64,000 nt of DNA from Octopus sinensis (GCF_006345805.1 NC_043007.1:72788001-72852000), one strand, 5' to 3'; positions 30,781 to 64,000 are shown, counted from the first letter of the stretch. The notes: a model not told the origin generated them from the sequence alone. Numbers and translations are program-made.

Positions 30781-30790
30781 CACACACACA
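30276..30790. repeat. Compound microsatellite (GCAC)n + (TA)n/(TACA)n
   Basis: Directly visible simple repeats. Confidence 0.98.
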
Positions 30791-31861
30791 AACTAAAACA
30801 TCATGAAGATTCATGAACTGATTTGGAGGACTGTTGCTGAACAGTTGACAAACTTGTTGATATGACTGGTGTCTTGTGCTCCTGCCAGCAAATTTTGAGT
30901 GAGGAATTCCTTTAATTTTTTTCCTCTCTCCTTTGCCTTTCTCTGTCTGTCACTACCTCTCCCTCCTTTGCTCTCTCATAGCTCCCATGTGACCATCGGC
31001 CATCTTTCTTTCTTTCCTTCTGATTCAACTGGATGAATCAGATGCATTCTTATCTGTCTGATGTCCAAGCTTGCTTCTCTGCATTCGCCACCTCATCTTG
31101 TTTAGGATTAGCAGTCCTTCCTGTTTGTTTTCACTGTCCTGTTCTTGTTACCAATTTTGACCCTCTGCAAAATCCCAAATTTTAAAAATTGCTTTGCAGG
31201 AGCAACTGTTTTATCAAAGGCATATTTTGTCATGAACTGCTTGAAATACAGATCAGCCAACAACTGATGAAGGGTCGTTCATTGTGTTTCTTTCGTTGTT
31301 TGCAAAAAAAAAAATAGTTCATATTCCATGTATTCATATTTCATATCTTCGTATTTTATGTTGTTTACGTTCTGTGATGTCCTGTGCCCACATATGCATA
31401 TGTATGTAAGTATGTACAGATACTTCGATCTTGTAAGGATGGACTTGGTGCTAACTTAACTGTATCTATTTTTTATTATATTTTTTTTTTATTATTATTA
31501 TTATTATTATAATTATTATTATTATTAATAGTAATTTTTATTAACTTTTATAGCTTTAGAATCTTATGAACTGTACCACGGATTTAATTATTATTTTTCA
31601 TCTCCATATATGTTAGCCTTTTTTTATATATATATAAAAAAAACTATGCCAAATATGTATAATATCGGTACTTATTGATATTAATATATACACTATATAT
31701 ATTTGTTTTATTTTGTTCTGTTTACCTTCCTTTTTTGTACAAATGTGTATTATATATATAAGTGTAGCTTTATGATGTATAATTTTATATTTTACATTTT
31801 ATATTTTATATTTATATGTATATGATTGTATAATATTTTTCACTATTATAACAAATTTAAT

Positions 31862-37391: not shown

Positions 37392-37538
37392 TGCCATCAC
37401 CAACAAATGTGACTACAGCTAAGATGAGTTTTACAACAACAGAAACTAACAGCCCTTTTAAATTCACCGTATTCCTTGCTATTATTGGTGTTGTGATCAG
37501 TCTGCTACTTTTGGTTCTTAGTTTTTACTGTTACAAAC
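37392..37538 (+). CDS. Gene A Ser/Thr-rich stalk + transmembrane exon: PSPTNVTTAKMSFTTTETNSPFKFTVFLAIIGVVISLLLLVLSFYCYK
   Basis: ctacag acceptor, gtgagt donor, phase 1-1; ~22-aa hydrophobic stretch followed by basic residues (type I TM). Confidence 0.88.
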
Positions 37539-41419: not shown

Positions 41420-43140
41420 TTAGATATTTAAGTAAATCTATTTCCTGTCTATTCTGACTTTTTGCAGCTCCTGGACATTTGTCACACACAAAGTCTACTT
41501 TCTCTGTTAACTTTGCTGTGATTCATCTGCTCCACTTGTTTGTACATACCTTACACTGAGTATATCATACAGAATTTCTACTCATGCCTTTTCTACATAT
41601 TGAGCAGGGCCGTTTTTCTGGTGGGAGTAGTGTTCTGTCTGTTTTCCTGCTGACTAGAACTTTGATCTTTGATAAGTTAAATTTTAAGCCCTTCAATTTC
41701 AGGTTTCTCTTCCACATCTGCAATTTCTTTTCTAATTCTGCAACATGTTCAGTTATGAAAATGAGGTCTTCAACTTCTCACAGACAAGTGATCATGTACT
41801 CCTCAGTTATTGTGTGCAGGACTATGATGGTAGGAAGGGACTGATTACTGAGCACTCTGCCTTTTACTTTTGTAGCAGTTGACTATGGTGCTGCTACACC
41901 AGTCATTGGGTATAACTCCTTCATGAACTACCTGATTTATAATACGGATGACTAGACCATAACTTACACTGCCGGATATTTTAAGCACCACAGTAGTGAT
42001 TCCTGATGGGCTGGGGTTTTTTTCTGTCTTCATATCCTTAATTGTTTTATCTACCAGGGTACTGTCAATTCGAATAACTGGTCCCTCTGTTGGGTCAATA
42101 TTTGGCAGACTCTCCTCCTATTCATTCTCCACATTCAACATTCAGCAGTCTTTCATAATGACATCTCCAAGCCTTTTTCCTCACAGACTCATTAAAAACA
42201 AGTGCACCATCATCCATACAGATACATTTCTCACCTATGACATCACAATTTTCTCTCACACACTGTCGTGCAATCCAAAATACTTCAGCTCATTGGTCCT
42301 CACGGTGCTGAATAAAGGCAAACTTCTTTTCTGCTTCTCCTTTGGCTAGATATACCTATCTCCTAGATTCCCTTCTGGCTATCTGATACAGTTCCCTGCT
42401 GCCCCCACTCTTCCAGGCCTGTTTCTTTGCTCTAATGGCCCAGTCTATAGTATTGTTCCACCACCACGTTACCCTAGGTCTGGAAGGGACTTTGCATCAG
42501 CCACAGATTTGGTCTGTGGCACTCGGCAAGCTATCCTGCATGAATTCCCAGTTGCCCTCTATATCACAATTTTGTAGCTGCTCCTCCCTCTCATCAAATT
42601 TCTCAATTAGGATGTCCTTAAATCTCTGACCATTTGAAGGGTCCTTAAGCTTCCAAATCCTTCTTTTACAGATTGGGCTGCATCTTGTCTTCCTTCTGGC
42701 CTGGAATCTAAAGCCGCTAATGACTAGCTTGTGCTGGGGAGTACATTTTTCACTAAGGAGGGTATTTGCATTTGAGAGCAATCATGCATCCTGCTGCCTG
42801 GTGAAAATGAAATCGACTTGGCTAGCAGTGTCACCTGATTGATAGGTTATCCGGTGGGTAGCTGGCTTCTTGAAGTTGGTGTTGCAGATCCAAAGGTTAT
42901 TCACATCACAGGACTCCAGTAGTCTTGTTCTCTCTTCGTTTTGGGAACTGATTCCATTGCCCCCATGTACACCATGGTAGATACCAGGCTGCTGCCCAAC
43001 ATACCCATTGAAATACCCAGCCATGAAGAGGAGATCATTGTCACATGTCTTGAAGGTAGCCTGCAGAAGAATATCATAAAAGTGGTCCTTCTGTTCATTT
43101 CACAAGCTCACTTGTGGGGCATAGGCAGGTATAATTGTAG
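41420..43140 (-). mobile_element. Decayed RTE LINE ORF2 fragment (AP endonuclease and start of RT)
   Basis: GYFNGYVG..YHGVHGGNG..NEERTRLLESCD..ICNTNFKKP..ITYQSG..SQVDFIF; HKLVISGF; PSPSGITT..NDWCSSTIVNCYK. Confidence 0.88.
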
Positions 43141-44026
43141 CTATACTATTCTGCAAGACTAACCTGAGCTTAATAATGAAGGAGCAGAACCAGTAAGGGA
43201 TGGGTAGTTAGGAGTTCATGATACTGTGGTTTGTGTTTGTATGTGTGTTTGTGCATGGATGAGTATGATAGGTGGGTAGTAAAGAAGGGTACCTGTGCTC
43301 AATGTATAATAGTGTTGAGGAATATAAGGAAGGATGGTACGTTAGAAATATATTTGAAAATTGAAGGTGAGATGGTATGTATGCCAATATGTGTGTGTGA
43401 AGTGAATGGTAACAGAAGATTGAATCTATAAGAAGTCAACTGTGTAAGTGTGTCTTTGTGTTTGTTCCCCTCCGTCTCTTGGGAACTGGTGTTGGTTTAT
43501 CTAGATCCCTGCAATCTAGTACTGTGGCAAAAGAGATTGATAGAATAAGTACCACACTTAAAAATACCTATTGAGATTGATTTGTTTGACTAAAACCTTT
43601 CAAGGCACTGTCCCAGCATGGCCACAGTCCAATAACTGAAACACATAAAAAGATCAATTTAAGAAGTAGGTGACTAGGTTAGTAAAGTGAAGTGTCTTTG
43701 AACATGGCTTAGAGCTACTATTATTAGGAATGAACTATTTCTCTAGAAACTCAATAACCTTTGTTTAAATAACTGATATCAGATCAAGAGTACCCAGGCT
43801 TGTTTTTTAAGGTCGCATTTAAAAGTTCTTTACTTCCTCTGTAGATGATTATATCTATTTTGAACTCTTGCTTTTCTGAATCCAAGTTTAATTGTGGTTG
43901 GTTTTGATATTTTAATTTTCTGGTGTCATGTAAGTTGTGTTGATCTATTATTTAGTTTAAAAATTGAATCTTTTAATTCTAATATATTGATATTTTATAA
44001 TTGATTCTGTGAATTTATAATTTCAG

Positions 44027-44257
44027 GGTCATTCCAAGAGAAAAGAGAGTTATTTCATATTAAAGACCCTTCTTACCACAAAAGTCTGAATTTATAATTC
44101 TTGTTTACTCCAAAGCTCTTCACAAAAGAATTTAGGCTTGGAAAAACAACCAAGATTACATATTACATAATTTTTTTTAAAAGAGGATAACTCAGCACTT
44201 TTGACAGCTTCCTTTTCCGGAGAACTTAAAGCAAGCAATAAACTTATAATTTCTAAT
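44027..44257 (+). pseudogene. Gene A terminal SEFIR exon, disrupted
   Basis: 'gtgaatttataatttcag|GG TCA TTC CAA GAG AAA AGA' aligns to gene B 'gtgaatttatattttcag|GA ACA CTC CAA GAG AAA AGA'; ~112-nt deletion after TAC CAC; then 'QKSEFIILVYSKALHKRI*AWKNNQDY'; homology ends near 44257. Confidence 0.85.
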
Positions 44258-44259
44258 GA

Positions 44260-45930
44260 TATATATAAAGTTAGTTGAGTCAGAGGTTAAAATAACCATC
44301 TAAGGGATAGAAGTATCCATTACACTACTGGTATATTACCTATGTTTAACCATGGGCATACATATGCAAACATATTACGCTCATAAATTATAGGTAAAGA
44401 CAAGAATAAACATGAGTTTATCAATAATCAAAATTTAAAGAAAACAGAAAATGGAGAAATATTAACAAACATCAATTATTATCTATTATTTCAATACAAA
44501 TAGACTTCAACCTATCTAACAGCTGTTTCTGCTCCAATGTTGTATGGTATTGCCATTGATATGCTAAATATATTTATCATATTTGGTAATAAAACTAACC
44601 TGAAACATGGAGCTTATTCTATCAATCTCTTTTGCCACACCTTCAATTTCCAAATATATTTCTAATGTACCGTCCTTCCTTACATTCCTCAAAGTGAAGA
44701 ATAAATAAAGAAGAGCATAGAGAAGAAAAAAGGAAAAGTTGAATGTGGTTATAATCATACCATTTTGCTTATGTATCTCTTTCAGAGATACACTAAAGCT
44801 ATGATTAATGCAATAAATAAAGATAAAACAGCTGATAGATTATATAATAACTTTATACTGAACATAAATAACCAACATAGAAATAGGGTAGTAGAAACGA
44901 CAAAGACCTTAAGACTAATTGCACAATCTGATATTGATAAAAACAACATAAATATAAGTATATCACACCCCAAGCATAATAAACCAAAGCACATTATGAC
45001 CAAAATCAGAAAAATATGAATAATAAATTAGCCATTGACCAAATCAATAGTTAACATGGCACCTTACAATGATAATAGCAACATTAACACTAATTACAAT
45101 ATAAAAAGGAAAAATAAAAATGATATACTTTATATAAAATCCTCTGTAACAAATGATGTTAATCTCAATTCTAGTAAAATAAAGGAGAATATTATCTGGT
45201 TAATATTGCCCATTGCTAAGCAAGTAAAAACAAGCTTAAAGTTATACGTCAGATAATAAAGAAACACTTCTCTTGTAATATAACAAATATAGTGACATAA
45301 TTCAGAATAGACATTTTAAATTTGGTCATTCTGTTTCCTATAATTTGTTTAGATATATATCTTCTATGAATTATCCAAAATTAGATAATTTTTATGCTAA
45401 GTGAAAGCTTAATATTCCCAATAATAAGCAAACACACAGTGTACCAGATAAAGCCAAATTCAAATATTCAAATATAAACAATTCAAAGGAAGCCTATTGC
45501 CCATAACCCACCTACTAATCCTAGTGATAATCTTAGTAAGTTCTGTGATTTTAGGGTTAAAGGGCAATGTAAATTTAATAATTATTGCAAATGGAAGAAT
45601 TTAGTATACCAAGCTATAGTAGAAACTGAAGATAAACTCTTTTACTACAATGGTTCTACGGAATCATATATGAAACTTTGATTAGCTAACCATGAGCTTT
45701 CTTTTAGAAACCCCAATAAACGTTCTTAGTAAATTCATCTGGAAATTAAAAGACAGTAATATCAATCTTAGAATTAGATGGAAGATTATATGTTCTGCAA
45801 AATCTTACCATCACCTGATAGAAATTGTCAACTCTGCACTTCAGAGTGCTATAACATCCTTTTTTCTAGTAAATAATTATTAAATGACAGAGTTGAAAAA
45901 TTCTTGCTTTGCCTACACTCTCCTGAATAT
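44260..45930 (+). mobile_element. Decayed Penelope-like element (RT remnants + GIY-YIG)
   Basis: 'GILPMF..HTYANIL' (RT); 'IVETEDKLFYYNGST..LSKFIWKLKDSNINLRIRWKIICSAKSY..CQLCTSECYNI..LLNDRVE' (GIY-YIG C-terminus). Confidence 0.75.
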
Positions 45931-46743
45931 CTATTTTATAAATATCATTAATTTTTTTAAAATTATTAATATCACTAATCATTAGGTTCCTTATTAACCA
46001 TAAATATTTTTACTAAAATTTGAAACTGAATTAATTAGATCCTTATTACAACCAGCATTTATATTAATTTTATAGAATTTAGAATATATATCTTGCTGCA
46101 ATATATATTTCTAACATATGCATAATATATATAAATGGTTATATTCCAACAATCATTCAGTTTTATTTTTTTTTTTGTAATATATATAAATAACATCTCC
46201 TTATCTATAAATTGTATATGATTTATTTATTTCTTATTTTAAGAGTAAATTAAAATATAATTCATATTTGTTAAATCATCTTTAAATATCAACACTTGTT
46301 TAACTACTAAATAGTCCTAATCTAATCTACCTTAGCAAAATAAAAAAAAAATCAATCATAAATACAAATACTGCATTTTTTCTTCATATAATGTAATACA
46401 CTATTCCTACATATTATGAAAAGAACTCCAATTCATTTTTATTAATTCAACTAATAATTAATAATTACAAACATATTATGCTACATTATAACAAATACCC
46501 AATATATGCTCCCATTTTATTTCATTATATAATATTTTTTTTTTTTCTCTTCACTCCTTCATTCAACTTTTCTCTTTATTTGACCTCTTAACTGATCAAT
46601 TCTAGATATTATACTTCCCATAACATAATTCTAACAATTTAACCTTTCTGATAATAGATAAATGCAAATAAATTTAATAAATATATATATTTTGAGTGTG
46701 AGTATATGTGTATGTATATGTGTGTGTGTGTTTATACATATAA

Positions 46744-49416
46744 AAGCAACAAGGATATCCAGAGGTAATGCAGTACGATCGTTTCATGCAACTCCATTTA
46801 ATTGAACAATGCAACCATTACATCAATTTAAATGCAGAGCAATCCTCAGCTGCACAAAGACAGAATTTAATTAAATTAAAACAGATGACACATTAGTATA
46901 ATTTTGTCTAAAATCTCCAAGAAGTTAAGGAGATAGACAAAGAACATGCTGCTTTTCCTTCCACTTAGAAGCTACTAAGTTATCAGGAAGAAAGATTTGT
47001 TACAAATTTTGCTTGTCAATTTTATATGGGGTCAGTTATAATTTATAGACTAGTTTTATCGAATCCTTGTATATCTGTTAGTGGGTAGGGCTGAGGGAGT
47101 CGACAGAAATCATAGTGGGCATAGTCATAAAAATCAAGATTTATTTGAAGCAATATCATGGGGTTTGGTAAAGGAAAACTTAAATCAAGATGTTAGCTGA
47201 CAATTAAGGGGGCTGGCCACTAGCAGACTATTGATAATGAAACAGAGGAAATCTTATGTAGTACTATAGTTCAATATTTTATGCAATACTGCTATATTGT
47301 ATAAAGTTAAAGTTTAGGGTTATTCAGAGGATTATTAATAATAATTATAACAAAAGGATAAAATGTTTTATGAATACTTTTGAGTATATACCAAACTTTT
47401 ACTACAAAAGAGGGAGGAAAAGAAAATTATCCAGAAGTAGTTTAATATTTATACATATTATAAACTTAAATACTAACTTATCAGATGGTATCAGTGAATA
47501 TTGATCAATTAGTATATACTGGTATTTAATATTGATCAATTAGTATATACTGGTACTGAGGTAAAAGAACATGCTAACTATAAATTAATTTAATTATAAT
47601 CTAATCAGTTTATTTTAAGTTGTGAATATACCAGTATTCTTATATATAAGCTAAGTATGAATTTATAGCGGTACAAATATTAGATTTATTTTATAAATAA
47701 ATAAATAAAGGCTATTATAAAATAATAAAGAAATAAAATAATCAGGTAGGGCAGAACACTATAGAAAAGGAATAAAATAGCTTAATTGCAAAAAAAAACA
47801 TGATAAAGTATATGTAGCTTATTAACCACAATAGAGATGATATATAGAAAATGTATAATAATTCAAAATATACTAAACTAAAAATTATATATTTACTTAT
47901 ATAGCTAGTATCAATACCTGATATTAGCTACGGGAATATTTATGTTATGGGACATTCTAATTTTACACTAATTTTTTTAAACTAAGGGTTATATTATAGG
48001 TTTTAGAAATTATTATTGTAACTCCATACATGATATTTTTAGTTTCTTAGGGGTATTTAATTAGAAGGGCTACTTATATCAAGGCCTTTATAAATACTAA
48101 GATCAGGCGGGGAGTACACTTTAATAAAGGGATAAATCAAGTAACTTCTAAAGATCATTTCAAACAATATTGCCATATTGTATAAAGTTAAAATTTAGGG
48201 TTTAGAAGATTATTAAGAATGATATTATAACAAACGGGTAAAACTTCTATGAATACTTTTGAGTATATACCAAATGTTACCACAATAGAGAGAGAAAAGA
48301 AAGTTACATGGAAATAGTTTAATATTTATGCTTATTAACTAAATATTAACTTATTAAATGGTATCTGTGGAGATTGAGCTATTAGAAATTTAATTGGTAT
48401 TTAATAAAGGAGCACTGAGGCTAAAGAACATGTTAACCATATACTAATTTAATTAAATTGAATTATTTTAAGTTGTGGAGATACCAGTATTGTTTTATAT
48501 AAGCTAAGTGTGATTTAATAGGGGTACAAAGATTAGATTTATCAAAGGCTATTATAAAATAATAAAATGATCATGTAGGGTAGTGCACCATAAAAAAGGA
48601 ATAAAGATAGCCTAATCACTAAAACCATTACAAAAAATATATACCTAATTAACTTCAATAGAGAAGATTTATATAGAATTTATAATAATTTAAGTATTGT
48701 GAACTAAAAATCGTTTAACTTATTTAGCTTAACACAAGACTGATACCCGGTATTTGTTAAAAGAATATTATTTAAAAGAACATGCTAATTATATATTAAT
48801 CTTAAATGAAGAGGTATAATATAGTACAGTATAGGTTTTTAAAGTTATTAGTGTTGATCTGTACATGATATTACATTTTCTTAGGGGTACTCAATTAGAA
48901 GGGCTGCTTGTATAAAAACCAATATAAATACTAAGATCAGGAGGATGGAACCCTTTAAGAAAGAGATAAAAAATTGATTACTAAAAACTATTTTAAACAA
49001 TATAGCCATATTGTATCAAGTTAAAATTTTGGGTTATCAAGAAGATTTAGCATTGAGGTGAAAGGACAAATTAACTATAAATTAATTAAATTATAATTTA
49101 AGCAGTTTAATTTTAAGTTGAGAAGATACCCCTATTGTTTTATATAAACTAAGTATTTATAACGGTACAAAAATTTAGGTTTATCTAAAAGCAAACACCA
49201 TAGAAAAGCATATAAAATAGCTTAATCAGTAAAAATCATCAACTTCTTGGAGATATTAGACAAATGTGTCCATCTGTTTAAATTTAATCAAATTCTATGT
49301 TTTTGTGCAGCTGAGGATTGCTCTGCATTTAAATTGATGTAATGGGTGTGTTGTTCAATTAAATGGAGTTGCGTGAAACGTTTGTACTGCATTACCTCTG
49401 GATATCCTTGTTGCTT
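46744..49416. mobile_element. Non-autonomous TIR/fold-back element: ~180-bp TIRs (46744-46926 / 49241-49416) enclosing ~2.4 tandem ~850-bp units
   Basis: 'aagcaacaaggatatccagaggtaatgcagtac...ctccaagaagtt' is the reverse complement of 'aacttcttggag...gtactgcattacctctggatatccttgttgctt'; anchor 'atattgtat.aagttaaa' recurs near 47294, 48175 and 49009. Confidence 0.85.
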
Positions 49417-49611
49417 ATTTTGATTCTAATCGCCTTATTTTGAAATTGTATGGACAATACCGTACTAAATTCTGGTGCCTCAACTTTAGTACCATATTCA
49501 TCTGAATCTAAATTTTTGCTGAACTTATATATGTATATACAAAATATAGATTTTGTGTCAATATATGCATATGTGTATATATGTGTAAATATGTACGCAT
49601 ATATATTGTAG

Positions 49612-49650
<39 letters not shown>

Positions 49651-50040
49651 ATAAGTACATAAATATGAATACATTTTATATATTGATGACAAAGGGTTCA
49701 CATGTAAGGCTTACATAGCATAATGGTTAGATTTTTCAAACTTTTGTCTATACCCAACAATATGATGTGAACACTAAGCATCCATAGATTTCCTGAACTG
49801 TATCTATTAACAAGCCAATGAAGATAATTCATCTTTAACAGTCAACTAATAATTGTTTTACTATCTAACTTATCCTTCATTTATTTTCATATATAATTCT
49901 TTCCTTGCATATTTCAGTATCATTCTTTCCTTTTATTTAAATATATATATTATTTTACATAGTTATATTTTTCTTTACTTTTTATATATCTTCTTAAACT
50001 TTATTTCTTTGTTATTTTTATTTTTTGTTTTATTTTATTA

Positions 50041-50344
50041 CTAGCAGTATCGCCTGGCGTTGCTCGGGTTTGTAAGGGAAATAACTATATAAGCATTTTT
50101 AGAGAGTTACTTCCCTTATATAAACCGAACAAAAAATGCATTAAAAATGCGGAAAAGTGATGGTAAATTTTTTTTAAATCGTAGACTCATCATAGATGCA
50201 CGCTAATACCCAGAAGGGCTCGATATGAATCACGACTATAAGATACCTGCTTTTGGTTAAACTGCATCGCAAAATGTGGGAGTAGTTAGGAATCTAAATT
50301 GGAGTAGACAGACACACACACAACTTTAGTTTTATATATAAAGA
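50041..50344 (-). mobile_element. Non-autonomous Helitron
   Basis: On the minus strand: A|TC..., subterminal hairpin cccgagcaacgccaggc, ...CTAG|T; no TSD. Confidence 0.85.
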
Positions 50345-51139
50345 TATCTTTACTTACATCTATATTTCACAAGCTAAATACATATTCATTATATGTGATC
50401 TAACTTAAACTTATTAGTAATTTGTCTTCATCCTTTCAAGAAATATTTTAACCTTTATTGTATAAGCTCATAAAGCCCTGATGAGATTCTGGCCCATATA
50501 GTTGAAAATGACCAATTCTTAGCATATGATCCTACCCAAATGCTTAGAATTACTATTCACCTAGGGGTATGAATCAAAACATATATATAGGTATTTGGCA
50601 TCTGCCATTTCTTTTACAGCTTTATAATTTATAATTTATTTGTATTGTTTTTATTAAAAAAATCTTCCAACCTCATTATATCATACAAATAAATTATTCA
50701 TACATCCGTAATTCTCCATTTTCTTCTTTCCATCATTATTACCAATATATATCACTATAATAATCTCTAACATATCACTGAGACTTTCTCTTTATATGAT
50801 AGTGATTAACCAGTAAAATCTTTGGATTATTTAATCCCTAATGAGGACATGTATGTGTGTGTATGTGAGAATGGTGTGTATGAATGTGTGAATAGGAGTT
50901 AGTGACTCTGATGTGTGTGCATCTGTAATGTGTGTTGTGTGTAGCAGATGAGGTGTGCTTTTTGACATGGTGTGTGTACATCTGTGTGTATGAGTCTGTG
51001 ACCAAACAGTGTGCATGTGTATGGCATGTATATGTTGGTGTAAGTTAATTTTTTCTATGTATGTAGTGTGTATTAATGGGTGTTGTGTGTGTGTATATAT
51101 ATATATATATTTATATATATAGCCTGTGTTCAGGTATTA

Positions 51140-52260
51140 TGTGCTTGTGGGAGTGTGCATGATGGTGTGTGGTATGTGTACTGAGTTACACAGTGTTTGT
51201 GGCTGCTCATATAGTGGCAAGTGCGGTGAAGCTATTGAAGATGGTGTGGGTGCTGGGAAGTGGTCAGTACTAGTGTGTTGGAATGTATTAGTAGTGTAAG
51301 GTGATATTGATGAAGAGAGGAGGGGAGTTGAGCCCATGTGGCACAAAGGACTAAAAAGAAGATTAATTCCTGTTCACGGTGAAAGTGAGAGTTCGCATAG
51401 CTTTTGTGCAAAGATAGTCCGAACACAGAAAGATGTAGTGAATGACCGGTAGAACAGAAATGGCATGAGACCAGGGAATCATTACCGAGTTTGATGTCTT
51501 GGAGGTGCTCCGCGAATTGGTCAGCTAAGTGGCATCTCGTTTGACCAATGTACAGGGAAGGGTGGAAAGCGCAGGAGATGCAGTAAATGATGTTACTAGG
51601 AGTGCAGGTAAAGGAGTCAGTGATGTGATAGGGATGATGATGGGTACCTGTGAGGATGGTGGTGTTGGAAGGTAGAGGCAAGTACAACAGTGAGGATGGG
51701 AGCAAGGGAAGGAGCCAGGCTGGGAGGTAGGGTTAGGGAAGAAACTGTGGACTAGGAGGTTGCACAGGTTATGAGCTTATTTGAAGGAGGGAAGAAGTAG
51801 GTTGGGGAAAATGTGTGAAGTGGAAGGATCAGACTGGAGACACCGGAAGGCTCAGAGAATGGTACATTGAAGGTGGGGGTGTAGTAGGTGAAAGGAAATT
51901 GGAGACAGGCAACGGCAGGGCAAATGCAGGGAGAAAAAGTACACAGAAGAGGAAATATCTACGTAAGATGAAGTGGTGAGCCATGAGTTGAGAATGAATC
52001 ACTAAGTCATGGTTGTCACTGCACAGATGGAGGAATTGGGAGTAAGGGATGGAGAGCTTGGTGTCAGTAGGGTGGGAGGAGGAGAAGTTAAGGTAAGTGT
52101 GTGAGTCCATATGTTTGTAGTGGATGGAGGTACTGAGAGTGAAGTGGTATATACTGAGAGAAATATTGAGAAATTCAATGGACGAGTAAGAAATAGTGCG
52201 ATAGAATTCGAGGGCAAGATGGAAGAATTGTACAAAAGAGAGCAAAGAGCCTAGTCATTC
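51140..52260 (-). mobile_element. Penelope-like element 3' part (RT C-terminus + GIY-YIG)
   Basis: TSIHYKHMDSHTYLNFSSSHP..SIPYSQFL; NIIYCISC..LYIGQT..LADQFAEH. Confidence 0.85.
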
Positions 52261-52487
52261 AGAGAAGGGTGAGGTCTCACCAATACAGTCATTGATATAA
52301 CGACCGTATAGTTTGGGAGTGGGACCAGTGAATTGTACATATGTATATAAGTTTATGTAGATATGTATATATATATATGTGTGTGTGTGTATGCATATAT
52401 ATATGTGTGTGTATGTGTAAATATGTGTGTGTGTATATATATATAAGTATCTGTGTGTGTATATATATAGAGAAAGAGAAAGAGAGG

Positions 52488-52860
52488 TGCAGGAGTGGCT
52501 GTGTGCTAAGTAGCTTGCTTACCAACCACATGGTTCTGGGTTCAGCCCCACTGTATAGCACCTTGGGCAAGTGACTTCTACTATAGCTTAAGGCCGACCA
52601 AAGCATTATTAGTGGATTTGGTAGATGGAAACTGAAAGAAGCCTGTCGTATATGTTTGTGTGTCTGTGTTAGTCCCCACTGCTATCACTTGACAACCGAT
52701 GTTGGAGTATGTACATTCCCGTAACTTAACAGTTTGACAAAAGAGACCAATAGAATAAGTACTAGGCTTACAAAGAATTAGCCCTGGGGTCGATATGTTC
52801 AACTAAAGGTGGTGCTCCAGCATCTCCGCAGTCAAATAGCTGAAACAAACAAAAGAATGT
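52488..52860 (+). mobile_element. SINE family A
   Basis: Same head and tail as 2339-2736. Confidence 0.85.
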
Positions 52861-52977
52861 ACATGTGTGTATCAATATATATACATAGGTGTGTGTGTTT
52901 GTGTATATATGCATGTGTATACATGTATATATATATACATGAGTGTATATATATCTGTATGTTTATATATATTTATG

Positions 52978-53008
<31 letters not shown>

Positions 53009-53129
53009 ATATGTGTATATATATATGTGTGTGTACCCCACAACATAGACCCAGGTGAAGAATGTATAGACTGGTAGTTAATGACTTTAGGATCAGGACT
53101 AAGTGAACACCCAGAAGATGACCAGCATG

Positions 53130-53525
53130 GAGAAGAAGTGCTTGGAAGCTTAAAGATACTGCAAATGGTCAGAGATTTAGAGACATACTACTTGAAGCCT
53201 TTAACAAAATAGAAGGGGATATAGCTTCACATGGTGTAGAAGACAACTGAAGATTTCTATAGGACAACCTGCTGAGAGCAACTGACCAGATCTGTGGATG
53301 GTGCAAAGTCCCCTCTCAACCCAAAATAACGTGGTGGTGGAACAATGTTGTAGACAGGGCTATTAGAGAAAAGAGACAGGCTTGGAAGGACTGGAAGAAC
53401 GGTGGTAGCAGGGAATTGTATGAGACTGCCAGAAGAGAAACTAGGAGACAGGTTTATTTAGCCAGAGAGAAGCAGATAAGCCCCTGTACCTGGCTTTCGT
53501 TGACATGGAGAAGGCCTTTGACAGA
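53130..53525 (+). mobile_element. RTE LINE ORF2 fragment with internal deletions
   Basis: 'tggtggtggaacaatgttgtagacagggc' and LYLAFVDMEKAFDR. Confidence 0.75.
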
Positions 53526-53598
53526 ACCTTAAATTTAAAGGTGAATTCTTTCGATTGTTGCAGAAATTCCACAGAGCTCATCAGTTCAATACCAAAAA

Positions 53599-54468
53599 GA
53601 CATGACATGTGAGGGTGATTTGCAAGGGCAGGGCCAATCCATAACATTACATGACATGTCGAACATTCACCAGAGGAACAGGGCCAATCCATAACATTAC
53701 ATGACATGTTGGGGAATCGCCAGAGGGGTAGACCCAACCCATAACATTACATGACATGTCAGAGATTCGCCATACGGGCAGGGCCAACCCATAACATTAC
53801 ATGACATGTTGGAAATTCGCCAGAGGGGTAGACACAACCCATAAGGTTACATGACATGTCAGGGATTCACCAGAGGGGCAGACAAACCATAACATTACAT
53901 GACATGTTAAAGATTCTCCAAAGGAGCAGGGCCAACCCATAACAGTACATGACATGTCAGATTCGCCAGAGGGGCAGACCTAACCCATAACATTACATGA
54001 CATGTTGGAGATTCGCCAGAGGGGCAGGGCCAATCCATAACATTACATGACATATCGGAGATTCACCAGAGGGGTAGAGCCAATCCATAACATTACATGA
54101 CATGCTGGAGATTCGCCAGAGAGGCAGACTCAACCCATAATATTACATGACATGTCAGGGATTCGCCAGAGGGGCAGACCCAATCCATAACATTACATGA
54201 CATGTCAGGGATTCACCAGAGGGGCAGACAAAACCATAACATTACATGACATGTCGGAGATTCGCCAAAGGGGCAGGGCCAACCCATAACATTACATGAC
54301 ATGTCGAAAATTCACCAGAGGGACAGGGCCAATCCATAACATTACATGACATGTCAGGGATTCACCAGAGGGGCAGACAAAACCATAACATTACATGACA
54401 CGTCGGGGATTCGCCAGAGGGGCAGAACCAACCCATAACATTACATGACATGTCGGAGATTCGCCAAA
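53599..54468. repeat. Minisatellite, ~50-bp unit, ~17 copies
   Basis: Unit consensus approximately CCATAACATTACATGACATGTCGGAGATTCGCCAGAGGGGCAGGGCCAAT, recurring every 48-51 bp. Confidence 0.97.
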
Positions 54469-57400
54469 GTAAAATAAATAAATGAAGACAGACCAATTTT
54501 ACTTGAAAAATTTTTAATAAAATAAACAATAAGATCTACAAAGATTGTAAATTTACAAACACACACATATATTAGTGCTTATATAAAGTAAAACATTTTG
54601 CATATGAAATATTTGTAAATATCTGTAAATGGTTTGTCAAAGTAGTTCCCATTTCCTACGTGAACCAAAATTACCTCCCCTATTATCATGGCAACAAATA
54701 TTTAAAGCATTTAGCATTCAGCTTATTCTGTCAAATGTAATGCTTATTTATTCAAATTGTTTCGAACTAATCATGCATAACCTCATAACTTTAATGATGT
54801 GATTGTTCATTTTTAATATGACTTTATAGGGTAGGTGCAAGAGGCTGGATCTGGTTGGTTTAATTGCTTATGGGTTAAATAAAACATGGTCAACAAAACA
54901 CTTTAAAACAGAGAACCATAATTTTACAAAAGTATAAAATGGAATGAGTTGGCACCATAAAATGTAATAAGAATTTTTGTACAAAAGTAGTAAACATAAA
55001 CAGAAAATTGTAATTATTGGTATATATCAACAGACTGATGTCAGTTTTGTTCCTTTTTGTTGTAAAAATAATACTTTGAAATTATAAATGGTAAAATATT
55101 ATAATATTAATTGGAATATGAATAATTTATTTATCATTGTCAGGTTTACAGGCTTCAGTCTTCTTTGGAATAGCTTGCTAGTAAAATATATATATGTATG
55201 ATGAAAAGTGAGTAATAAAAATATATGTATGATGAAATATATACATGATGAAAAGTGAATAATTAACAAATTTTAATTAATCGTGAATCTTGAAATATAA
55301 AATCTCACCATCATTATCATCATCATTGTCATTTAACATGTTTTCCATACTGGCATGGGTTGAACTTTTTGACTTGAGCTGACTAGTTGGAGACCAGCAC
55401 CAAGCACCAACTATCTGCTTTGGCATAATTTCTATGGCTGGATGTCCTTAACAATGAAATCCATCTCCATAGGATGACAGTAAACACAAATGTAGCTCTG
55501 TTATTATGCATAATTTTTTCCAAACAATTATGTTTAAACCTATTCATGGCCAAATCTAACTTCTCTATATGTCAATGTAGAGTATTGTTTTTGCATGAAG
55601 AAAAATGTGAATCCATCTAGTTTTAGTAATTAATACCACAAATTCATTTTCTTTTCAATATGGAATATTAAAAAAATAAAACATAATATTTAATGGTTTT
55701 AAAACCTTTCTGATGATGATCAATCTTATAAACATGAATATTTATTTTATATGAATCAATATCTTTTAATATATACAAAAATAAATGTGTCATAAGAATG
55801 TATATACCCAACCAACATTGGAATTTCTCTTCTTGTAGATTCAGATATGCTTCTGTCCATAATCTCAAGCATAGTATCAAAATTAAAGAATTAATAGATT
55901 TCGACATATGTCGCAAGTTCATCAAACTAACCTTCAGAAAATTAGAAGAATACAGATTCCAATGAAAATGAATGAGTATTTAAAACAAATGCTATCAAAA
56001 TAGAAAGACAAATATTATGATAAAAGATTTCTTACAAAACATTAATTAATCATTCTTAAATTTAAAAGAATTGTTGTATGTGGAGGGTTTGTTTGAAATA
56101 ACTGAAAAGAAATCAATATTGTAATACTAGAATGGCAAACTTCAATAAAACTCATAAAATCATAATTGATTAGTTTATAAAGAATTTGGTATTTTCAAAT
56201 AAAAATTTGAATAATTATCATTATCAAGTCTCAGTTTGTAAATAGTATGTGTGTATGTGAGTGTGTGTGTATGGCTAGATGGTGTGAATGTGTACACATA
56301 CATATATAATTGTATGTATAACAGGATTCAGACACACACATCCATACAACATCCATCACTCAAATTAGAGTGGCTTGGTAGCATATTTTACATCCCTGTG
56401 AAGAATGAACATGCAAAGTATAATTTAACAATCTCTTCTCTTATATTCTAAACTGCATGAAATGTCCAGTTTTTTGCTACATACTTTGGATTTAGAAAGT
56501 ACTTATTTTCATTTAACTAGTTAACTTAACTAATTAATATTCCATTGCTTGTTAATAGCTAGTGAATATTACTAGTATTCATCCTGAGTATTCTATTAGC
56601 TAAATATATGTTAGAGTTAATTGCCGGGATGATTGAGATCCTCACAACTTTACGCACACACACACATGATTACGAGCCACTGGGGTAAACAAAACCCTTT
56701 TTCCTCAGAGTGAAAGGTAGATTGTATGATGTTTTCATGCTCTATTGTAGTGAAACTAGGGACTTGAATACAGAGGATTTGAGTAGACGAGAAAGAAATG
56801 AAGCAAGCATGCTTTGTTGGATGTACATGAAAGACATAGTACAGATATGCTGAGAGAAAAACTGGGCACAAAATGAATCAGATGTAGAATGCAAGTAAGA
56901 TGACTCACTGGTAGAGACAATTGATGTGCATGGATGAGGACAACTTAATAAACAAAGTACCAGTCATTTAATGTAGATAGAGCTTTTGGAAGAGAGATAC
57001 TTGGAAAGACATGGGGAAAAATTATGAAAGCTGATCTCAAGACCTTGAAGCTCACAGAGGATGATACTGAATTAAGGTGACTGGAAATATGCAGTTCAAA
57101 TCCACTCATCTCAGTAACACAGATTCTAGAAGCACAATCTGTATGTACATATATATGTGTATAGGCACAATTGGGTCCTCTCACCCATTTTCCTTTTGAA
57201 GACAACCCCACCACCAATCGTCTCTCTAACTGCAGTATTCTGCTGTTGTAATTTAATATTAGTTGAACTGCATATATCACCAGCTTTCCTCTACACCACT
57301 TATTTCACATGATTCTTCATACTGTTTTATTTGCTTGAACTGATGAATACAAATTTTCCTCTAAGCCTGCAGGAGCCAACAGAAAATGGCATTATCATAA

Positions 57401-57486
57401 GAAAATCTTGGAGATGCTTCCTATTCAGGGTCATTAAAAGTTCAATAAATTTACAATTTAATAAACTGTCTGAATTTTGGAAACTT

Positions 57487-57867
57487 TACTCTTTTATTTG
57501 TTTCAGTTATTTTGACTGCGGCCATGCTGGAGCACCGCCTTTAGTCGAGCAAATCAACCCCAGAACTTATTCTTTGTAAGCCTAGCACTTATATTTGTCT
57601 CTTTTGCCGAACTGTTAACTTACGGGGACATAAACACACCAGCATCGGTTGTTAAGCAATGTTGGGGACACACACACACAAACATATATACACATACATA
57701 CATATATATGACAGGCAACTTTCAGTTTCCATTTACCAAATCCAGTCACAAGGCTTTGGTCAGCCCGAGGCTATAGCAGAAAACACTTGCCCAAGGTGCG
57801 ACACAGTGGGACTGAACCTGGAACCATGTGGTTGGTAAACAAGCTACTTACCACACAGCCACTCCTG
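57487..57867 (-). mobile_element. SINE family A
   Basis: Reverse complement of the family A consensus. Confidence 0.85.
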
Positions 57868-58081
57868 TCCTATCCTCATAAAAATATAATTATTTCTCAC
57901 AGTAGCATGTCAATGAAGTAGGCAAGAGTAAAAAATAAGTTGTTTTGTTTTTTAATGTTAAATGTGGATTTTGCTGTTTTTGTCTCTATGAGAGAAAGAC
58001 GAATACAGAACGTCAGGTAAGGGAAGGAAAAAGGCAGAGTGAAAAGGTAATAGAAAAGCAGGAAGGATCCAGGATGAGATA

Positions 58082-58386
58082 TCTTTATATATAAAACTAA
58101 AGTTGTGGGTGTGTCTGTCTACTCCGATTTTGATCCCTAAATACTCCCACATTTTGCGGTGCAGTTTAACCAAAATCGGGTATCTTATAGTCGTGATTCA
58201 TATCAAGCCCTTCTGGGTATTACCGCGCATCTACGATGAGTCTAAGATTTAAAAAAAAATTTACCATCACTGTTCCGCATTTTTAATGCATTTTTTGCTC
58301 GGTTTATATAAGGGAAGTAACTCTCTAAAAATGCTTATATAGTTATTTCCCTTACAAACCCGAGCAACGCCGGGCGATACTGCTAA
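58082..58386 (+). mobile_element. Non-autonomous Helitron, same family as 50041-50344, opposite orientation
   Basis: A|TCtttatatataaaa...hairpin cccgagcaacgccggg (58359-58374)...CTAA|T. Confidence 0.85.
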
Positions 58387-58448
58387 TAAAATTAAAAGAA
58401 TGGAACCAAATCTTTGTTAAAACAAATGAATCCAGCCTATGAATCCTT

Positions 58449-59152
58449 TTAAACTGATGAGTCATTGTACTCATTGATCTGTTCCAACATATAACTTACA
58501 GGGACTGAAAAAATACTACGTTCACATCCATCTGAAAAGTTTGCACTGTAATCAGGCATTTCATTTAAAGATTCCATTTTCTTAGGGCAAATATATTTGT
58601 CTTCAAACCAATTGGAATTATTTTCTTCAAATGTGGCAGCATTCTTAATTGTGTTTGTCAAAGAGTTAAATTTATGATTGAGCTTGTTACTCTTGACACG
58701 AATAGCAAGCTCTTGATGCACTCTTGATCGATGGATTTTTTTAATAAGTGAGTTCAACTCTTTTGTAAGAGTGTAACACTTGATTGAAGGTAATTCACTG
58801 CTGATACTGGAGATTGGTACCTGAGGAAACTTACAAATGATAAGTTTGTTGCTTGCATTAAGTTCTCTAAGAAGGGAAACTGTCAAAAAATTTTAAAAAT
58901 TTATGTAATCTTGGTTGCTTTTCCATGCCTGAATTCTTTTGTGAAGAGCTTTGGAGTAAACAAGAATTATAAAATCAGACTTTTGAATTTCTAAACTCAG
59001 TCTTAATGGATCACCACCTTTCACTAGCCGAGCAGCAACTTCTAGTTTACATTTACTCTTATTCATGAAAGATATAAACTTATCAATGGCTTCACAGTGG
59101 TAAGTATGGTCCTCTGTATAAAATAACAGCCCTCTTTTCTCTTGGAGTGTTC
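58449..59152 (-). pseudogene. Gene B terminal exon: SEFIR domain + C-terminal tail of an IL-17R-like protein, with an in-frame TAA at 58893-58895
   Basis: Phase-1 acceptor attttcag; LLFYTEDH..H..AIDKFISFM..CKLEV..QKSDFIILVYSKALHKRI..DYINF*NFLTVSLL..KLIICKF..LPSIKCYTL..L fits SEFIR; ends ..EYNDSSV*. Confidence 0.88.
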
Positions 59153-59574
59153 CTGAAAATATAAATTCACACAATCAATAATAAAATATCAACAATATAT
59201 GAGAATTAAAGGTGTGAAATTCTTTAACTACATACAAGATCAACAGAATTAATCATACCATTTTAAATGGCCCAGAAAAATAAAATTCCAAAACCAGCCA
59301 CAATAAAACTTGAATTCAGAAAAGTGAGATTTCAAAATAGATATAATCATCTACAGAGGAAGTAAAGAAGTTATGTGATCACTTGACATGCAAGAACTTT
59401 TAAATGTGACCTTAAAAAATGTGGCTGTGTAATCTTAATCTGATATCAGTTATTAAAACAAAGGTTATTGAATTTCTAGAGAAATAGCTCATTCCTAATA
59501 ATAATAACTCTAAGCCATGTTCAAAGACACTTCACTTTACTAACTTAGTCACCAACTTCTTAAATTGATCTTTT

Positions 59575-59890
59575 TATGTGTTTCAGTTATTGGACTGTGG
59601 CCATGCTGGGGCAGTGCCCAATAGTTATTTTTTAAGTCTGGTACTTATTCTATCAGTCTCTCTTGCCACACAGCTATATTATAAGGATGGAGACAAACCA
59701 ACACCAGTTCTCAAGAGATGGAGGGGAACAAACAAAAATACACACGCACTGTCGATTTCTTATAATTTCAATCTTCCAAATGTACTCAGAAGGCCTTGGT
59801 TGGCCAAAGGCTACAGTAGAAGACATTTGAACAACAAGTCACACAGTAGGACTGAACCTAAGATCACATTGTTTGGAAGCAAGCTTATAT
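59575..59890 (-). mobile_element. Old SINE family A copy shared with the duplicated segment at 43425-43655
   Basis: Identical junction 'ccacagtccaataactgaaacacataaaaagatcaatttaag' in both copies. Confidence 0.8.
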
Positions 59891-60849
59891 ATCAATAAAA
59901 ATATTCTCACATTCACACACACATATAAATAATGATAAGACAGGCTGTAAACTTTCATTCATCGGAGAATCTAGGCTGTTTTATTTCACTGAACATTTCT
60001 GTGAATCTGTTGTAGTCCACCTAGCTGTAATAAGTATCTAATAAACCAATATCACAATTAGTTATAGTAGTATTACTATTACTGTCATGATTATTACAAT
60101 CTCTGTTGATATATAATTATTACTTTGTCACCTATTATTGCTAATATAATCCTACTGCTGTTATAACTAGTACCACCAGCACTTCTTATTTTGATATTAG
60201 CAACCACAAGCTCTATCAATCATTCATTCTTCACATATATTCTAACAACCTTTACCTATCTTTCTTCATCCTTCTGTCTCTATGCTTTCTTCTATATTAC
60301 CTTCTGGAACATGTTACCTTGAAGGTACACTCAAGTACCTCATCACCACAATCTCTCTTTTGGCACCATTCCCTGTAACCCACCTACCCTTATATGATAT
60401 TGGGAAGCCTTGAATCTCCCCAACAGCAATAAACTTTTCTGGTTTTTCCCATCATATTTGAACCTCACATAAAACCAACTCATACTCTGATACTCTCTCT
60501 CTCAGTCTTGCAGATTACAAGGCAACATCACTAATGCTGGTGCCACCAGTACATATTTTCAAGTAGATGGCATAAAGAAGGCAATCCAGCCACAAGAACA
60601 ATTGGAGAGAGATGTGATCCTCCAGTCTGTTGGATCTTGCTGAAATGATCAATTCATGCCAGCATGGCAAGCGGACATGTTATGACCATAATATTAAAGA
60701 CTGCTTTAAAGATCGATGAGTTACCTCTTCTAGGTTCAGTAAAAAAGGCAGAGATAACAATGTTCTAGGATGCCCAGGAGGCTCCCTAGAAGTAGCAGAT
60801 AGTTTCTGTTATCTAGGTAACCTAATTATCAGTGGAAGCAATGGAAGTA

Positions 60850-63555
60850 TAGGATAAGGAGCAGTTAGAGAAAATTTAGAGAACTTTTAACTCTTTTAGT
60901 AACAAAAGTCCTCTCTCCCAGAGTGAAAGGCAGATTGTATGATGCCTGTGTATGAAACAGCAATGCTTTATGGTTGTGAAACTTGTTCTAAGAATTCAGA
61001 AGATATGTAAAGACTAGAGAGAAATAAAACTAACATGCTATGATGGACGGGTAATGTTAGTGTGCGTGTGCAACAAAGTACGTATGTACTGAAAGAAAAA
61101 ATGGGCATTAGAATCATCAGATTAGAATCATCAGATATTCTTGAACATATGCTGGGCAAGCCCCAGGTGTCTTTCATGGAGAGCATGGGGGCCATGGAAT
61201 TGGTTCCTGAAATGAGGAGGGAACAAGGCTACTGGAGATCAGTGATGCAAATGACTTAATGATCTGCAACACCAACTTCAGAAAGCCAGCCAGTCACCTG
61301 ATAACCTACAAATCTGGTGACCATGCTACACAGATTGATTACATTCTCACCAGAAAGTGGGATTCATGGCTGCTCATAAATGCAAAGACCTTCCCTGGAG
61401 AAGAATGTACCACACAGCATAGGTTACTCATTAGTTACTTCAAACTACTGGCACAAAGGATCCCAAGAAGCAACCAAGTTTCGAAAAAGAAGATATGGAA
61501 GCTTAAGGATCCTTTGAACAGTCAGAGATTTAAAGATGTCCTAAATGAAGCATTTAATGAGAAGGAGGAGGACTTGTAACATAGAGGATAACTGGAAGCT
61601 CCTACAAGACAACTTACTGAGAGCTACAAACAAAATTTGTGGCTAGTGCAAAGTGCCAAACAGGCCTAAGGTGATGTATGGTGGAACAGTGTAGCTGACA
61701 GGGCCATCAGAGCAAAGAAACAGGCTTGGAAGGATTGGAAGGGTGTTGGTAGCAAGGAGCTAGATCAGGCAGCTAGAACGGAAGCTAGGAAGCAGGTATA
61801 TTTAGCCAGAGGTAGAGCAAAAAGGAAGAAGTTGACCAATGTTCTGCAGCATGAGGACCATCAGCTTCAAGTGTTTTGGTTTGCAAGACAGTGTGCCAGG
61901 GAAAATTATGATGTGGGAGAGAAGTGTGCTCACATGGATAATGGTTCACTTGCATTTAGTGACTCAGCAAAAAGAGGCTTGAAAGTGCCTCTATGAAAGG
62001 CTGCTAAGTGTAGAGAACTCATGGGAGGAGGAGAGTCTGCTTATGGATCCAACAGAGGGACTATCAATCCAAATAGACAGAAGCATTTTAGGCAAAAATA
62101 TGAAAGATATGAAGATGGGGAAAGCCTTCGGCCCATCAGGAATCACCACTGAGATGCTTAAAATATCTGGTGGTGTGGGCTATGGTTTAGTTGCCCATAT
62201 ATTTAAGCAGGTAGTACACAAAAAAGACATACCCAATGGCTGGTGTAGCAGCACCATAGTCAACTGCTACAAGGTGACACCTTAGATAGAAATAATTACA
62301 AAGGCATCAAATCGTTGGAACAAGTGATGTAAGTCACGGAGAGGATCATAGCCCAACTAATTAGGGAGAGAATTGGTTTAGATGAGATGCAGCTTGGTTT
62401 TGTGCCAGGGAAAAGGCACCTCTGATGCTACATTTCCAGAGTGGCAGTTGCAGGTGAAGTACCTAGCCAAAGATAAACTTCTGTACTTGACTTTTGTTGA
62501 CATGGAGAAAGCCTTTGACAGGATCTCCTGTTCCCTTATCTGGTGGTCAATGCAGAAACTAGGGATAGATGAGTGGTTGGTGAGAGTAGTACAAGCTATG
62601 TACAAGGATGCAGTCAGTAAGGTGAGGGTTGGCAACAAGTATAGCGATGAATTCAAGGTAGAAGTAAGAGTTCACCAAAGATCAGTCCTCCACCCACCTC
62701 TTGTTCATCATAGTCCTCCAGGCAATAACAGAGGAATTTAAGATGGACTGCCCCTAGGAGCTCCTCTGTGCTGAGGATCTTGTTCTTAAAGCTGAATCAC
62801 TACCAGAACTAGAGAAGAAATTTCAGGCATGGAGGCAATGCCTAGAAGCAAAGGGCCTCAAATGTGTATAGATGAGGAGAGCTGTGTAAAGAAGTGCTGA
62901 TCTCTAACTGTAGAGGGAACCTGTGGAAGAGGTAGACCCAGGAAGACATGGGACAAGGTGGTGAAGTATGATCTTCAAATGTTGGGCCACACAGAGGCAA
63001 TGACTAGTGACCGAGACATTTGACAATATGCTATGCTTGAGAGGAACCATCAAGTCAAATGAAATCACAGTTATGGCCAATGCCGGAATCACATAACTGG
63101 TACCCATGTTGGTGACATGTAAAAAGCACCTTTCGAGTGTTGGGCCTCATGGAGGTAATGTGCAATGCTGGTGTCACATATCTAACACCTGTGCTGGTGT
63201 TGTATAACTAGCACCTGTGCCTTTCAAGAATCAGTCCTCACGGAGCAATGACAAATGACCAAGACCTTCAGCAATATGCCATGCTTGAGAAGAAGACCCA
63301 TCAAGTTACATGAAATCCTAGTTGTGACAGCTACCAGTGTCATGCAACTGGCATCTATGCTAGTGGCACATAAAAGCACCCATTATACTCTCAGAGTGGT
63401 AGGCATTAGGAAGGGCATATAGCTGTAGAAACCATGCCAAATCAAACTGGAGTCTGGTGGAGACTCCAGCCTGCCAGCCCTGGTAAAACTGTCCAACCCA
63501 TGCCAGCATGGACAATGGATGTTAAATGATGATGATGATGTTAATGATGATGATG
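60850..63555 (+). mobile_element. Rearranged RTE LINE (3' fragment, then APE-RT, then 3'UTR with (GAT)n tail)
   Basis: ICNTNFRKPASHLITY..QIDYIL; GPSGITTEMLK; VDMEKAFDR; ADD-region remnant; tail 'gttaaatgatgatgatgatg'. Confidence 0.88.
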
Positions 63556-64000
63556 ATATTTACATTTCATTTGATTGCATTCACTTAACCTTTGCTAGTT
63601 CCAAATAGTTTTTTATGAAGAAACAGAAGATGAATATAATAATTTACTATACACAACTGTTATAAGATCACTATGGAATGATAAAAATTAATCACCGAAT
63701 TTTGAACTTCAGCTCAGTATAGTTTTTTGATAGAGAATGTCTCTGCTCTGCTGTTATTTGCAAACACTGGAGGTTGTGGCGACTGGGGTTCTCTGCTATT
63801 TAAATAACACAAATGAATCTAACTAAATTTCAAACATTATCCACACAATGTGCCGAAAGAAACTACGATGGGGGCCCTCCAGGAGGTCCAGCATGAAGAC
63901 CGTTTTCCCACACCCGGTCATTCCACAAATAATTGCAGAGTGGGGGCCCGGTGGAAAGAGTTGATGATACGAAGTATCAGTATAAGTTGAGCACTGAGAC

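Follow-up and report, generated by a model that had tools for sequence, protein, structure and literature searches.

Where does the signalling exon of a receptor go when its locus holds two copies of it, in opposite orientations, and can a working receptor still be encoded there? This question is raised by a 64-kb stretch of octopus DNA (GCF_006345805.1, NC_043007.1:72788001-72852000; hereafter the window, which is free of any N) containing two copies of an exon coding for a SEFIR domain, the cytoplasmic domain of the interleukin-17 receptor (IL-17R) family. A preliminary description of the window had interpreted them as a tail-to-tail duplicated pair of IL-17R-like genes with separate lesions in both signalling exons. 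The orientation was confirmed, copy A being on the plus strand and copy B on the minus strand, and base reading together with alignment with relatives confirmed the separate lesions. In its assembled form, the locus codes for no intact SEFIR and consequently cannot signal in the IL-17R manner. Instead of being a simple duplicated pair, it has an older, more complicated history with inversion or exchange: at about an even chance, a single working gene, made of the 5' exons of gene A and of exon B, was split by an inversion in the lineage of the window.

Two inverted and disabled copies of one exon

Self-BLAST and a repeat search of the window revealed an inverted homology between 43415-44256 (+) and 59776-58831 (-), with a first segment pairing 43415-44079 and 59776-59097 (E = 2.5e-174) and a second one pairing 44079-44256 and 58985-58831 (E = 1.6e-37). 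The self-comparison thus recovered the pair previously placed at 43425-44257 and 58845-59770, coordinates that were correct to about 15 bases. The identity between A and B reaches about 78% with gaps counted and 86.5% over aligned sites, and the match is far above chance. On the A side, the homology island of 0.84 kb (43415-44256, +) comprises the 3' half of an old element resembling a short interspersed element (SINE; 43415-43650), 376 nt of intron and a remnant of the last exon. On the B side, the corresponding intron segment (59153-59885, -) carries the SINE in a more complete form (59885-59572), and homology to A extends to 59776. At least six younger relatives of this element are present within the window. 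The features said to be common to both copies, namely the SINE-to-intron junction, the intron, the phase-1 acceptor and the start of the SEFIR exon, were seen base by base in each of them. The acceptor AG is located at 44025-44026 in A and at 59154-59153 in B, and both phase-1 acceptors fit the phase-1 donor (C/GTGAGT, 37538/37539) of a transmembrane (TM) exon situated upstream of A.

The exon remnant of copy A, which holds the start of SEFIR, covers 230 nt (44027-44256, +). Exactly 112 nt are absent at 44079/44080, resulting in a frameshift and in a TAA codon (44095-44097) in the shifted frame, and a CAG codon has become TAG at 44133-44135. These three lesions had been listed before (the loss as about 112 nt) and all are present in the alignment, which added a 3-nt deletion and an 8-nt net insertion. 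Homology stops at 44256, where the exon is truncated. Copy B is a complete last exon (58449-59152, -), from the acceptor AG at 59154-59153 to the natural stop at 58451-58449, and encodes SEFIR and a SEFEX-like tail. Its only disabling lesion is an in-frame TAA (58893-58895, -), at which LKEDNSAL is replaced by a stop followed by NF. This codon belongs to a complex change in which 15 nt net were lost, and elsewhere the frame is open to the natural stop, in agreement with the earlier report of a nearly complete copy with a TAA inside SEFIR. It had also been proposed that each copy keeps what the other has lost, and this holds: the 15-nt stretch deleted from B is still present in A, and B keeps the 112 nt as well as the roughly 380 nt of 3' sequence gone from A.

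The lesions, i.e. frameshifts, TAA, TAG and truncation in A, and the TAA with the 15-nt loss in B, affect an exon that is kept intact by relatives of three species. The loss of both SEFIR copies is the ordinary decay of an immune-receptor gene, with the better copy facing away from the otherwise intact gene.

Assignment of the exon to the IL-17R family

A Pfam SEFIR (PF08357; gathering cut-off, 23 bits) search of both exons had been advised as a check of their identity. The conceptual product of B matched at 22.0 bits (E = 2.2e-4, positions 4-147 of 150), 1 bit below the cut-off, and the fragments of A gave no Pfam SEFIR match. The SEFIR identity was nevertheless borne out by the intact octopus relatives, which exceed the cut-off (P0001, 26.2 bits; P0004, 27.7 bits; P0005, 31.1 bits), and by a profile of the octopus family, which matched the SEFIR structures of IL-17RB/RA (PDB 9ot1, E = 1e-14), IL-17RA (4nux, E = 1.4e-7) and IL-17RB (3vbc, E = 7.8e-4). 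This match extends into the region that follows SEFIR. The resemblance to vertebrate IL-17RA and IL-17RB is at the profile level, over SEFIR and the following extension; identity is low, the ectodomains are different, and coupling to Act1/CIKS would be hypothetical.

A database search with the B product retrieved four octopus proteins with 75-81% identity; exact look-ups of the open reading frame (ORF) of B after its TAA and of P0004 gave no match. Besides SEFIR, P0004 has an ILCR1-type Ig-like domain and a TM segment, and P0034, P0005 and P0004 present the full type-I layout with an ectodomain, one TM helix and a cytoplasmic SEFIR. In the octopus family, the order is signal peptide, D1, ILCR1-type Ig-like D2, one TM helix, and SEFIR with the SEFEX-like tail, the last two being encoded by one last exon. 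This domain order is the same as in the C. elegans ILCR-1-type receptors (ILCR1_N, Ig_ILCR1, TM and SEFIR), but the octopus proteins are shorter, their SEFIR is weak on Pfam (22-31 bits) and their ligand binding is only putative. In the window, Ig_ILCR1 and a hydrophobic TM exon are present, with a SEFIR part that is broken. When P0004 was searched exhaustively, 31 representatives emerged from 1.84 billion proteins, and its distant relatives (about 750 amino acids) combine Ig_ILCR1 with a strong SEFIR (77-84 bits). By these comparisons, the locus belongs to a small, divergent octopus branch of IL-17R-like receptors.

Gene A: eight intact exons before a ruined one

The exons upstream of copy A, all on the plus strand, were located by tblastn with P0004, P0009 and P0005. 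The first visible coding exon is a mini-exon (4618-4645, ending in APYYLYKTS; P0009 and splice sites), whose phase join to the next exon gives SCCQEDL, as in P0009 and P0034. No signal-peptide exon was found in the window; it probably lies before the window start. Three D1 exons with canonical splice sites follow, sharing respectively 75%, 87% and 87% amino acid identity with P0009: exon a (7650-7778, CQEDLDVF to AVWNA; AG/GT, phase-1 donor), exon b (13110-13222, LTHLKGFKIEYEY to SISN) and exon c (16562-16679, HNFEFEIHPVRKNKE to EVDTL). The D2 (Ig_ILCR1) domain is distributed over three exons. Exon 1 (21126-21289, CREW to NSSK) was recognized with P0004 and P0009 and by its splice sites; in exon 2 (22759-22818, MTTRLTHEFHGISPGNYSIT), Ser stands in place of a Cys kept by all relatives; and exon 3 (26165-26267, VEIFDEHPFSNCIC to EFT) shows a 2-codon in-frame deletion, with the conserved FW motif lost. 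The TM exon (37392-37538, ending in FKFTVFLAIIGVVISLLLLVLSFYCYK) precedes the donor mentioned above.

Altogether, gene A has eight visible coding exons with 16 canonical splice sites, and their phases fit one another and the last exon. Upstream of the last exon, the roughly 810 coding bases are free of stops and frameshifts; compared with O. vulgaris, their length differs in three places, each time in frame. The Pfam Ig_ILCR1 model matches the spliced ectodomain at 72.9 bits. A database search with the D2 and TM peptide gave no match. Copy A is therefore the ruined last exon of an otherwise intact gene of about 40 kb (4618-44256, +). Splicing the TM exon conceptually to the remnant of copy A would give a tail of 23 residues, RSFQEKRELFHIKDPSYHKSLNL, followed by a stop.

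Such a product could be more than a relic, if gene A were selected as a SEFIR-less, membrane-anchored decoy whose TM exon is spliced to the acceptor of the dead exon, translation stopping after the 23 cytoplasmic residues; the decoy would have arisen by an inversion exchanging the signalling exon for an old broken copy. The eight intact exons, the three in-frame indels, the intact acceptor and a stop within the last exon are all compatible with this view. However, D2 is without the cysteine kept by all relatives and without the conserved FW motif, and the ectodomain evolves with a ratio of nonsynonymous to synonymous divergence (dN/dS) of 0.6-0.7, no different from the fast-evolving ectodomains of the family, and we consider a decoy improbable. 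Two intact genes of the family differ in D2 at a dN/dS of about 0.8.

Divergence from O. vulgaris is uneven along gene A. The D1 exons show a dS of 0.08 and the D1 introns a distance K of 0.05-0.085, whereas D2 and TM reach a dS of 0.36 and a dN of 0.26, with K = 0.17-0.28 in nearby introns. This contrast suggests either a hypervariable ectodomain or exchange among paralogues.

Copy B and its flanks

Copy B lies 14 kb downstream of A and carries at least 4.7 kb of its own intron and about 4 kb of 3' flank; this flank is present once in the window, joined to B. The whole block (54469-63848, -) is colinear with O. bimaculoides LOC106875972 from the last intron through the last exon into the 3' flank (about 90-91% identity, K = 0.04-0.09) and also with LOC115217573 of O. 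sinensis and its O. vulgaris counterpart (K = 0.08-0.16). No TM or ectodomain exon was detected by tblastn in the 4.85 kb upstream of exon B, up to the window end. The gene pair of the preliminary description thus stands for A, which has its eight intact upstream exons, and is unproven for B, for which the window holds no ectodomain or TM exon. The dN/dS of B against O. vulgaris is 0.37, the values between intact genes being 0.11-0.28, which indicates that B was under constraint for most of its history.

At its left end, colinearity with the O. bimaculoides 3' flank stops exactly at the edge (54469) of a tandem array (53600-54469; 50-bp unit, about 17 copies, 83% match). At the other end, an open frame with a P-loop-like motif (GMTGCGKTVFMLDLLEGP…; 63849-64000, -) begins where this colinearity ends, and is probably either a mobile element inserted in the intron of B or the mark of a breakpoint.

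Age and relationships of the copies

Distances in the last-exon region were measured on 707 gap-free columns with the loci of O. vulgaris (L001), O. sinensis (L004), O. bimaculoides LOC106875972 (L005) and the O. bimaculoides paralogue of the latter (L003); L003 and L005, which come from the O. bimaculoides assembly, contain many runs of N. A further O. vulgaris locus, OX597843.1 (L002), was compared as well. K amounts to 0.150 between A and B, 0.140 between A and L005 and 0.175 between A and L004, but only to 0.073 between B and L005 and 0.102 between B and L004. A recent local duplication was rejected, the A-B distance exceeding those between B and the other two loci; the split between A and B must be at least as old as these species splits. 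Private indels number 12 in A, 4 in B, 3 in L005 and 2 in L004, and a grouping of A with B received a bootstrap value of 31%. Neither copy is the closest relative of the other, and A is a long, older branch; given the weak bootstrap value, the lineages may all have separated almost simultaneously. The exons nearest to B are functional ones from other species, those of LOC106875972 in O. bimaculoides and LOC115217573 in O. sinensis. The earlier duplicated pair therefore holds for the presence of inverted exon copies and fails for their being simple local duplicates.

The SINE junction, the intron and the acceptor are common to L001, L004, L003 and L005 and absent at L002. Presence of the junction at L001/L004, L003 and L005 means that the SINE is old in this receptor family. 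The claim that it predates the A/B split is borne out; its use as a mark of this particular pair is not, as the junction is shared by these other loci.

Arrangement at other loci and history of the window

At L001, L004, L005 and L003, the 5' exons, the last exon and the 3' flank are on one strand. The window is colinear with the loci of other species on the plus strand over 4543-37582 and on the minus strand over 63848-54469. The plus-strand colinearity with all these loci stops at 37582, i.e. 42-44 bp past the TM exon, and the window lacks 300 bp of intron that the other loci have conserved. Outside the 0.84-kb island, the intron that precedes the exon of A has nothing in common with the last introns of the receptor family.

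The window was compared with O. sinensis LOC115217573 (XP_029643174.1, 563 amino acids) and its O. vulgaris counterpart (CAI9729973.1 and P0009), where a 5' half resembling that of gene A is on the same strand as a B-type exon and the 3' flank of B. Their exon-intron layout and splice phases are those of the window locus, and at this locus the window diverges from O. vulgaris and O. sinensis by 5-15%. Their 5' flank and D1 exons are colinear with 4543-17218 (K = 0.05-0.085), and their last exon and 3' flank with the B block. Unlike the window, they have an intact gene on a single strand and D2 and TM exons that are strongly diverged from those of the window. The annotation of O. vulgaris splits one gene into two models (L001 1-9953 and 10001-24603), the first of which (P0009) is fused to a gag-like N-terminus, while the O. 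sinensis model is full. O. bimaculoides LOC106875972 (XP_014779801.1, 412 amino acids) is the closest to the B block, over about 9.4 kb of colinear sequence. It differs from the window by its intact SEFIR, its cis arrangement and the deletion of three D1 exons (L005 about 20554-20906), and its 5' half is not close to that of gene A. At L002 (5657-6739 and 10001-10735), the P0003 model is limited to the SEFIR exon. Upstream, parts of the intron normally located after the TM exon are present, but no TM exon was detected, and L002 may be another rearranged member of the family.

The cis joining at the O. sinensis and O. vulgaris loci implies that inversion or exchange was part of the history of this locus, a history that is a mosaic. 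According to our preferred reading, the 5' exons of A and exon B would have formed one working gene until recently, as in O. sinensis. An inversion in the lineage of the window, with one breakpoint just past the TM exon (37582/37583), would have turned the good exon away and left the old dead copy A in the position of the last exon; the receptor would now be a pseudogene or at most give a tail-less product. The inversion of one gene is suggested by the other species, in which the B-type exon and its flank follow, in cis, a 5' half colinear with that of gene A; in O. sinensis and O. vulgaris, this 5' half is also the one closer in sequence to that of gene A. A one-gene origin is likewise suggested by the absence of disabling lesions in the 5' exons of A, whose three length differences keep the frame, and by the single lesion of B after past purifying selection. 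Such a history accounts for the nearly clean state of the 5' exons and of B and for the heavy decay of A.

The situation recalls the F8 intron-22 inversion, in which a gene is disrupted by inversion between a repeat inside it and an inverted copy located beyond its limits. In both cases, part of the gene is present nearby as an inverted copy, and the 3' portion points away from the 5' exons. In the window, however, the repeat includes part of the last exon and its arms are about 86% alike today, the breakpoint at 37582 is outside the A/B homology, and the second breakpoint is outside the window.

Several observations weigh against the splitting of a single gene. The 5' half of gene A is nearer to O. 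sinensis (K = 0.075, 0.152 and 0.174) than to O. bimaculoides (0.158, 0.211 and 0.364), and the B block shows the reverse (about 0.07 to O. bimaculoides versus about 0.13 to O. sinensis); on this evidence, they may come from separate gene lineages, which would fit a complete gene B with its own 5' exons beyond 64000. Divergence is a mosaic along the gene (dS = 0.08 in D1 and 0.36 in D2 and TM), and every argument from distance may be blurred if paralogues have exchanged sequence. At the O. sinensis and O. vulgaris loci, neither the gene nor the 10 kb downstream of it showed an A-type copy or fragment, and the missing second breakpoint has to be counted here too.

Alternatively, in a static form of the preliminary reading, two complete paralogous receptor genes would have long been tail to tail, A having lost its SEFIR exon early and B having been disabled recently; B would then be the orthologue of LOC106875972 with its 5' exons beyond 64000, and the O. 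sinensis/O. vulgaris gene a rearranged recombinant. In favour of this view, the 5' half and the B block have different nearest relatives, A branches outside B, L005 and L004 over the region of the last exon, the 5' halves of A and L005 are separated by 0.12-0.21, similar to the 0.15 between A and B, and the intron of B is colinear to about 0.7 kb from the L005 TM exon, so that a TM exon could lie just off the window. On the other hand, the exon of A has accumulated indels at an approximately neutral rate since the split, yet the other exons (about 810 nt) are clean, a state which needs selection on a SEFIR-less gene A or repeated gene conversion; moreover, the intron of A is unlike the last introns of the family and no 3' flank follows A. 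We hold this two-gene origin to be possible but rather unlikely.

The cis arrangement found at every other locus examined could also mean that the block from about 37.6 kb to beyond 64 kb is misoriented in the assembly, or that one copy is a collapsed or duplicated haplotype. Inverted repeats, which are a known cause of orientation errors in assemblies, are present. The window is, however, devoid of N, and a flipped block would still hold the TAA of B. The haplotypic duplicate that had been envisaged as a refutation is contradicted by the divergence between A and B (about 13-15%, with many indels), which is far above the difference between haplotypes; the copies are not allelic. An artefact of this kind, including a wrongly oriented stretch, is very unlikely.

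Sequences around copy A

The place of the rest of exon A is occupied by an AT-rich block (44257-50027; 24-28% GC) with internal tandem and inverted repeats: a tandem duplication of about 0.9 kb (47276-48211 and 48157-49047) is flanked by inverted repeats of 180 bp (46744-46926 and 49241-49416). The preliminary description attributed the truncation of A to a Penelope-like element. This is not sustained: a search for reverse transcriptase in these 5.8 kb detected none, and a short ORF (45478-45880) has a GIY-YIG-like motif whose similarity is not significant, with neither a Pfam nor a database match. Farther away, 7 kb from A, 51235-51732 (-) gives a weak Pfam GIY-YIG match (E = 0.024). It is included in a retroelement remnant (51235-52254, -) with a YIGQT…EH motif and, upstream, a stretch of the HYKHMDSHTYLNFSSSHP type; the remnant, which may be Penelope-like, is 5'-truncated by microsatellites and a SINE.

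Two short stretches situated to the left of A and 153 bp apart, 43315-43369 (55 nt) and 43523-43554 (a 32-nt piece of the SINE of A), are found again to its right, inverted and abutting, at 44608-44692. No further copies were detected in the window or in L001-L003. The 55-nt inverted repeat (43315-43369 and 44638-44692) with the adjoining 32-nt SINE piece was considered as transposon ends carrying a captured gene fragment, a candidate rejected for want of other copies and of further homology. The arrangement looks like a scar of template-switch or fold-back repair, or like the ends of an element.

Two other candidates for an extended homology were discarded. The pair 41870-43003 and 62272-61148, taken as an extension of the A/B duplication, is part of an abundant family of repeats, of which the window contains four copies or more. 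K between the A-side and B-side copies is about 0.35, versus 0.14 in neighbouring sequence; the B-side copy is also present in other species, and the A-side copy is probably an independent insertion. The inverted pair 50028-50349 and 58396-58077 (about 300 bp, 93.5% identity), taken as the displaced 3' flank of A, is a young repeat pair: the copy at 58077-58396 starts about 55 bp past the stop of B, a position at which O. vulgaris, O. sinensis and O. bimaculoides all lack it.

Elsewhere in the window, a reverse-transcriptase fragment (1118-1612, +; RVT_1, 31.4 bits) and a long compound microsatellite with spurious ORFs on both strands (30218-30796) were observed.

Implications for the octopus IL-17 system

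For annotation, the A and B pieces should be treated as pseudo-exons of one receptor locus and not as two independent genes. The locus adds a new member, a broken one, to a known kind of receptor. The IL-17 ligands are expanded in the octopus, as the preliminary description had stated, 31 genes being cited for O. bimaculoides in PMC8353272. In full-text searches of the literature, two papers only were retrieved in which cephalopods appear alongside SEFIR or the IL-17 receptor.

The evolution of the D2 ectodomain is very fast, and our results suggest that, in this family, rearrangement around inverted copies of the signalling exon can detach this exon from the halves coding for ectodomains or swap it among them. 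The locus is thereby a record of turnover on the receptor side of the octopus IL-17 system, a side that has been little described so far.

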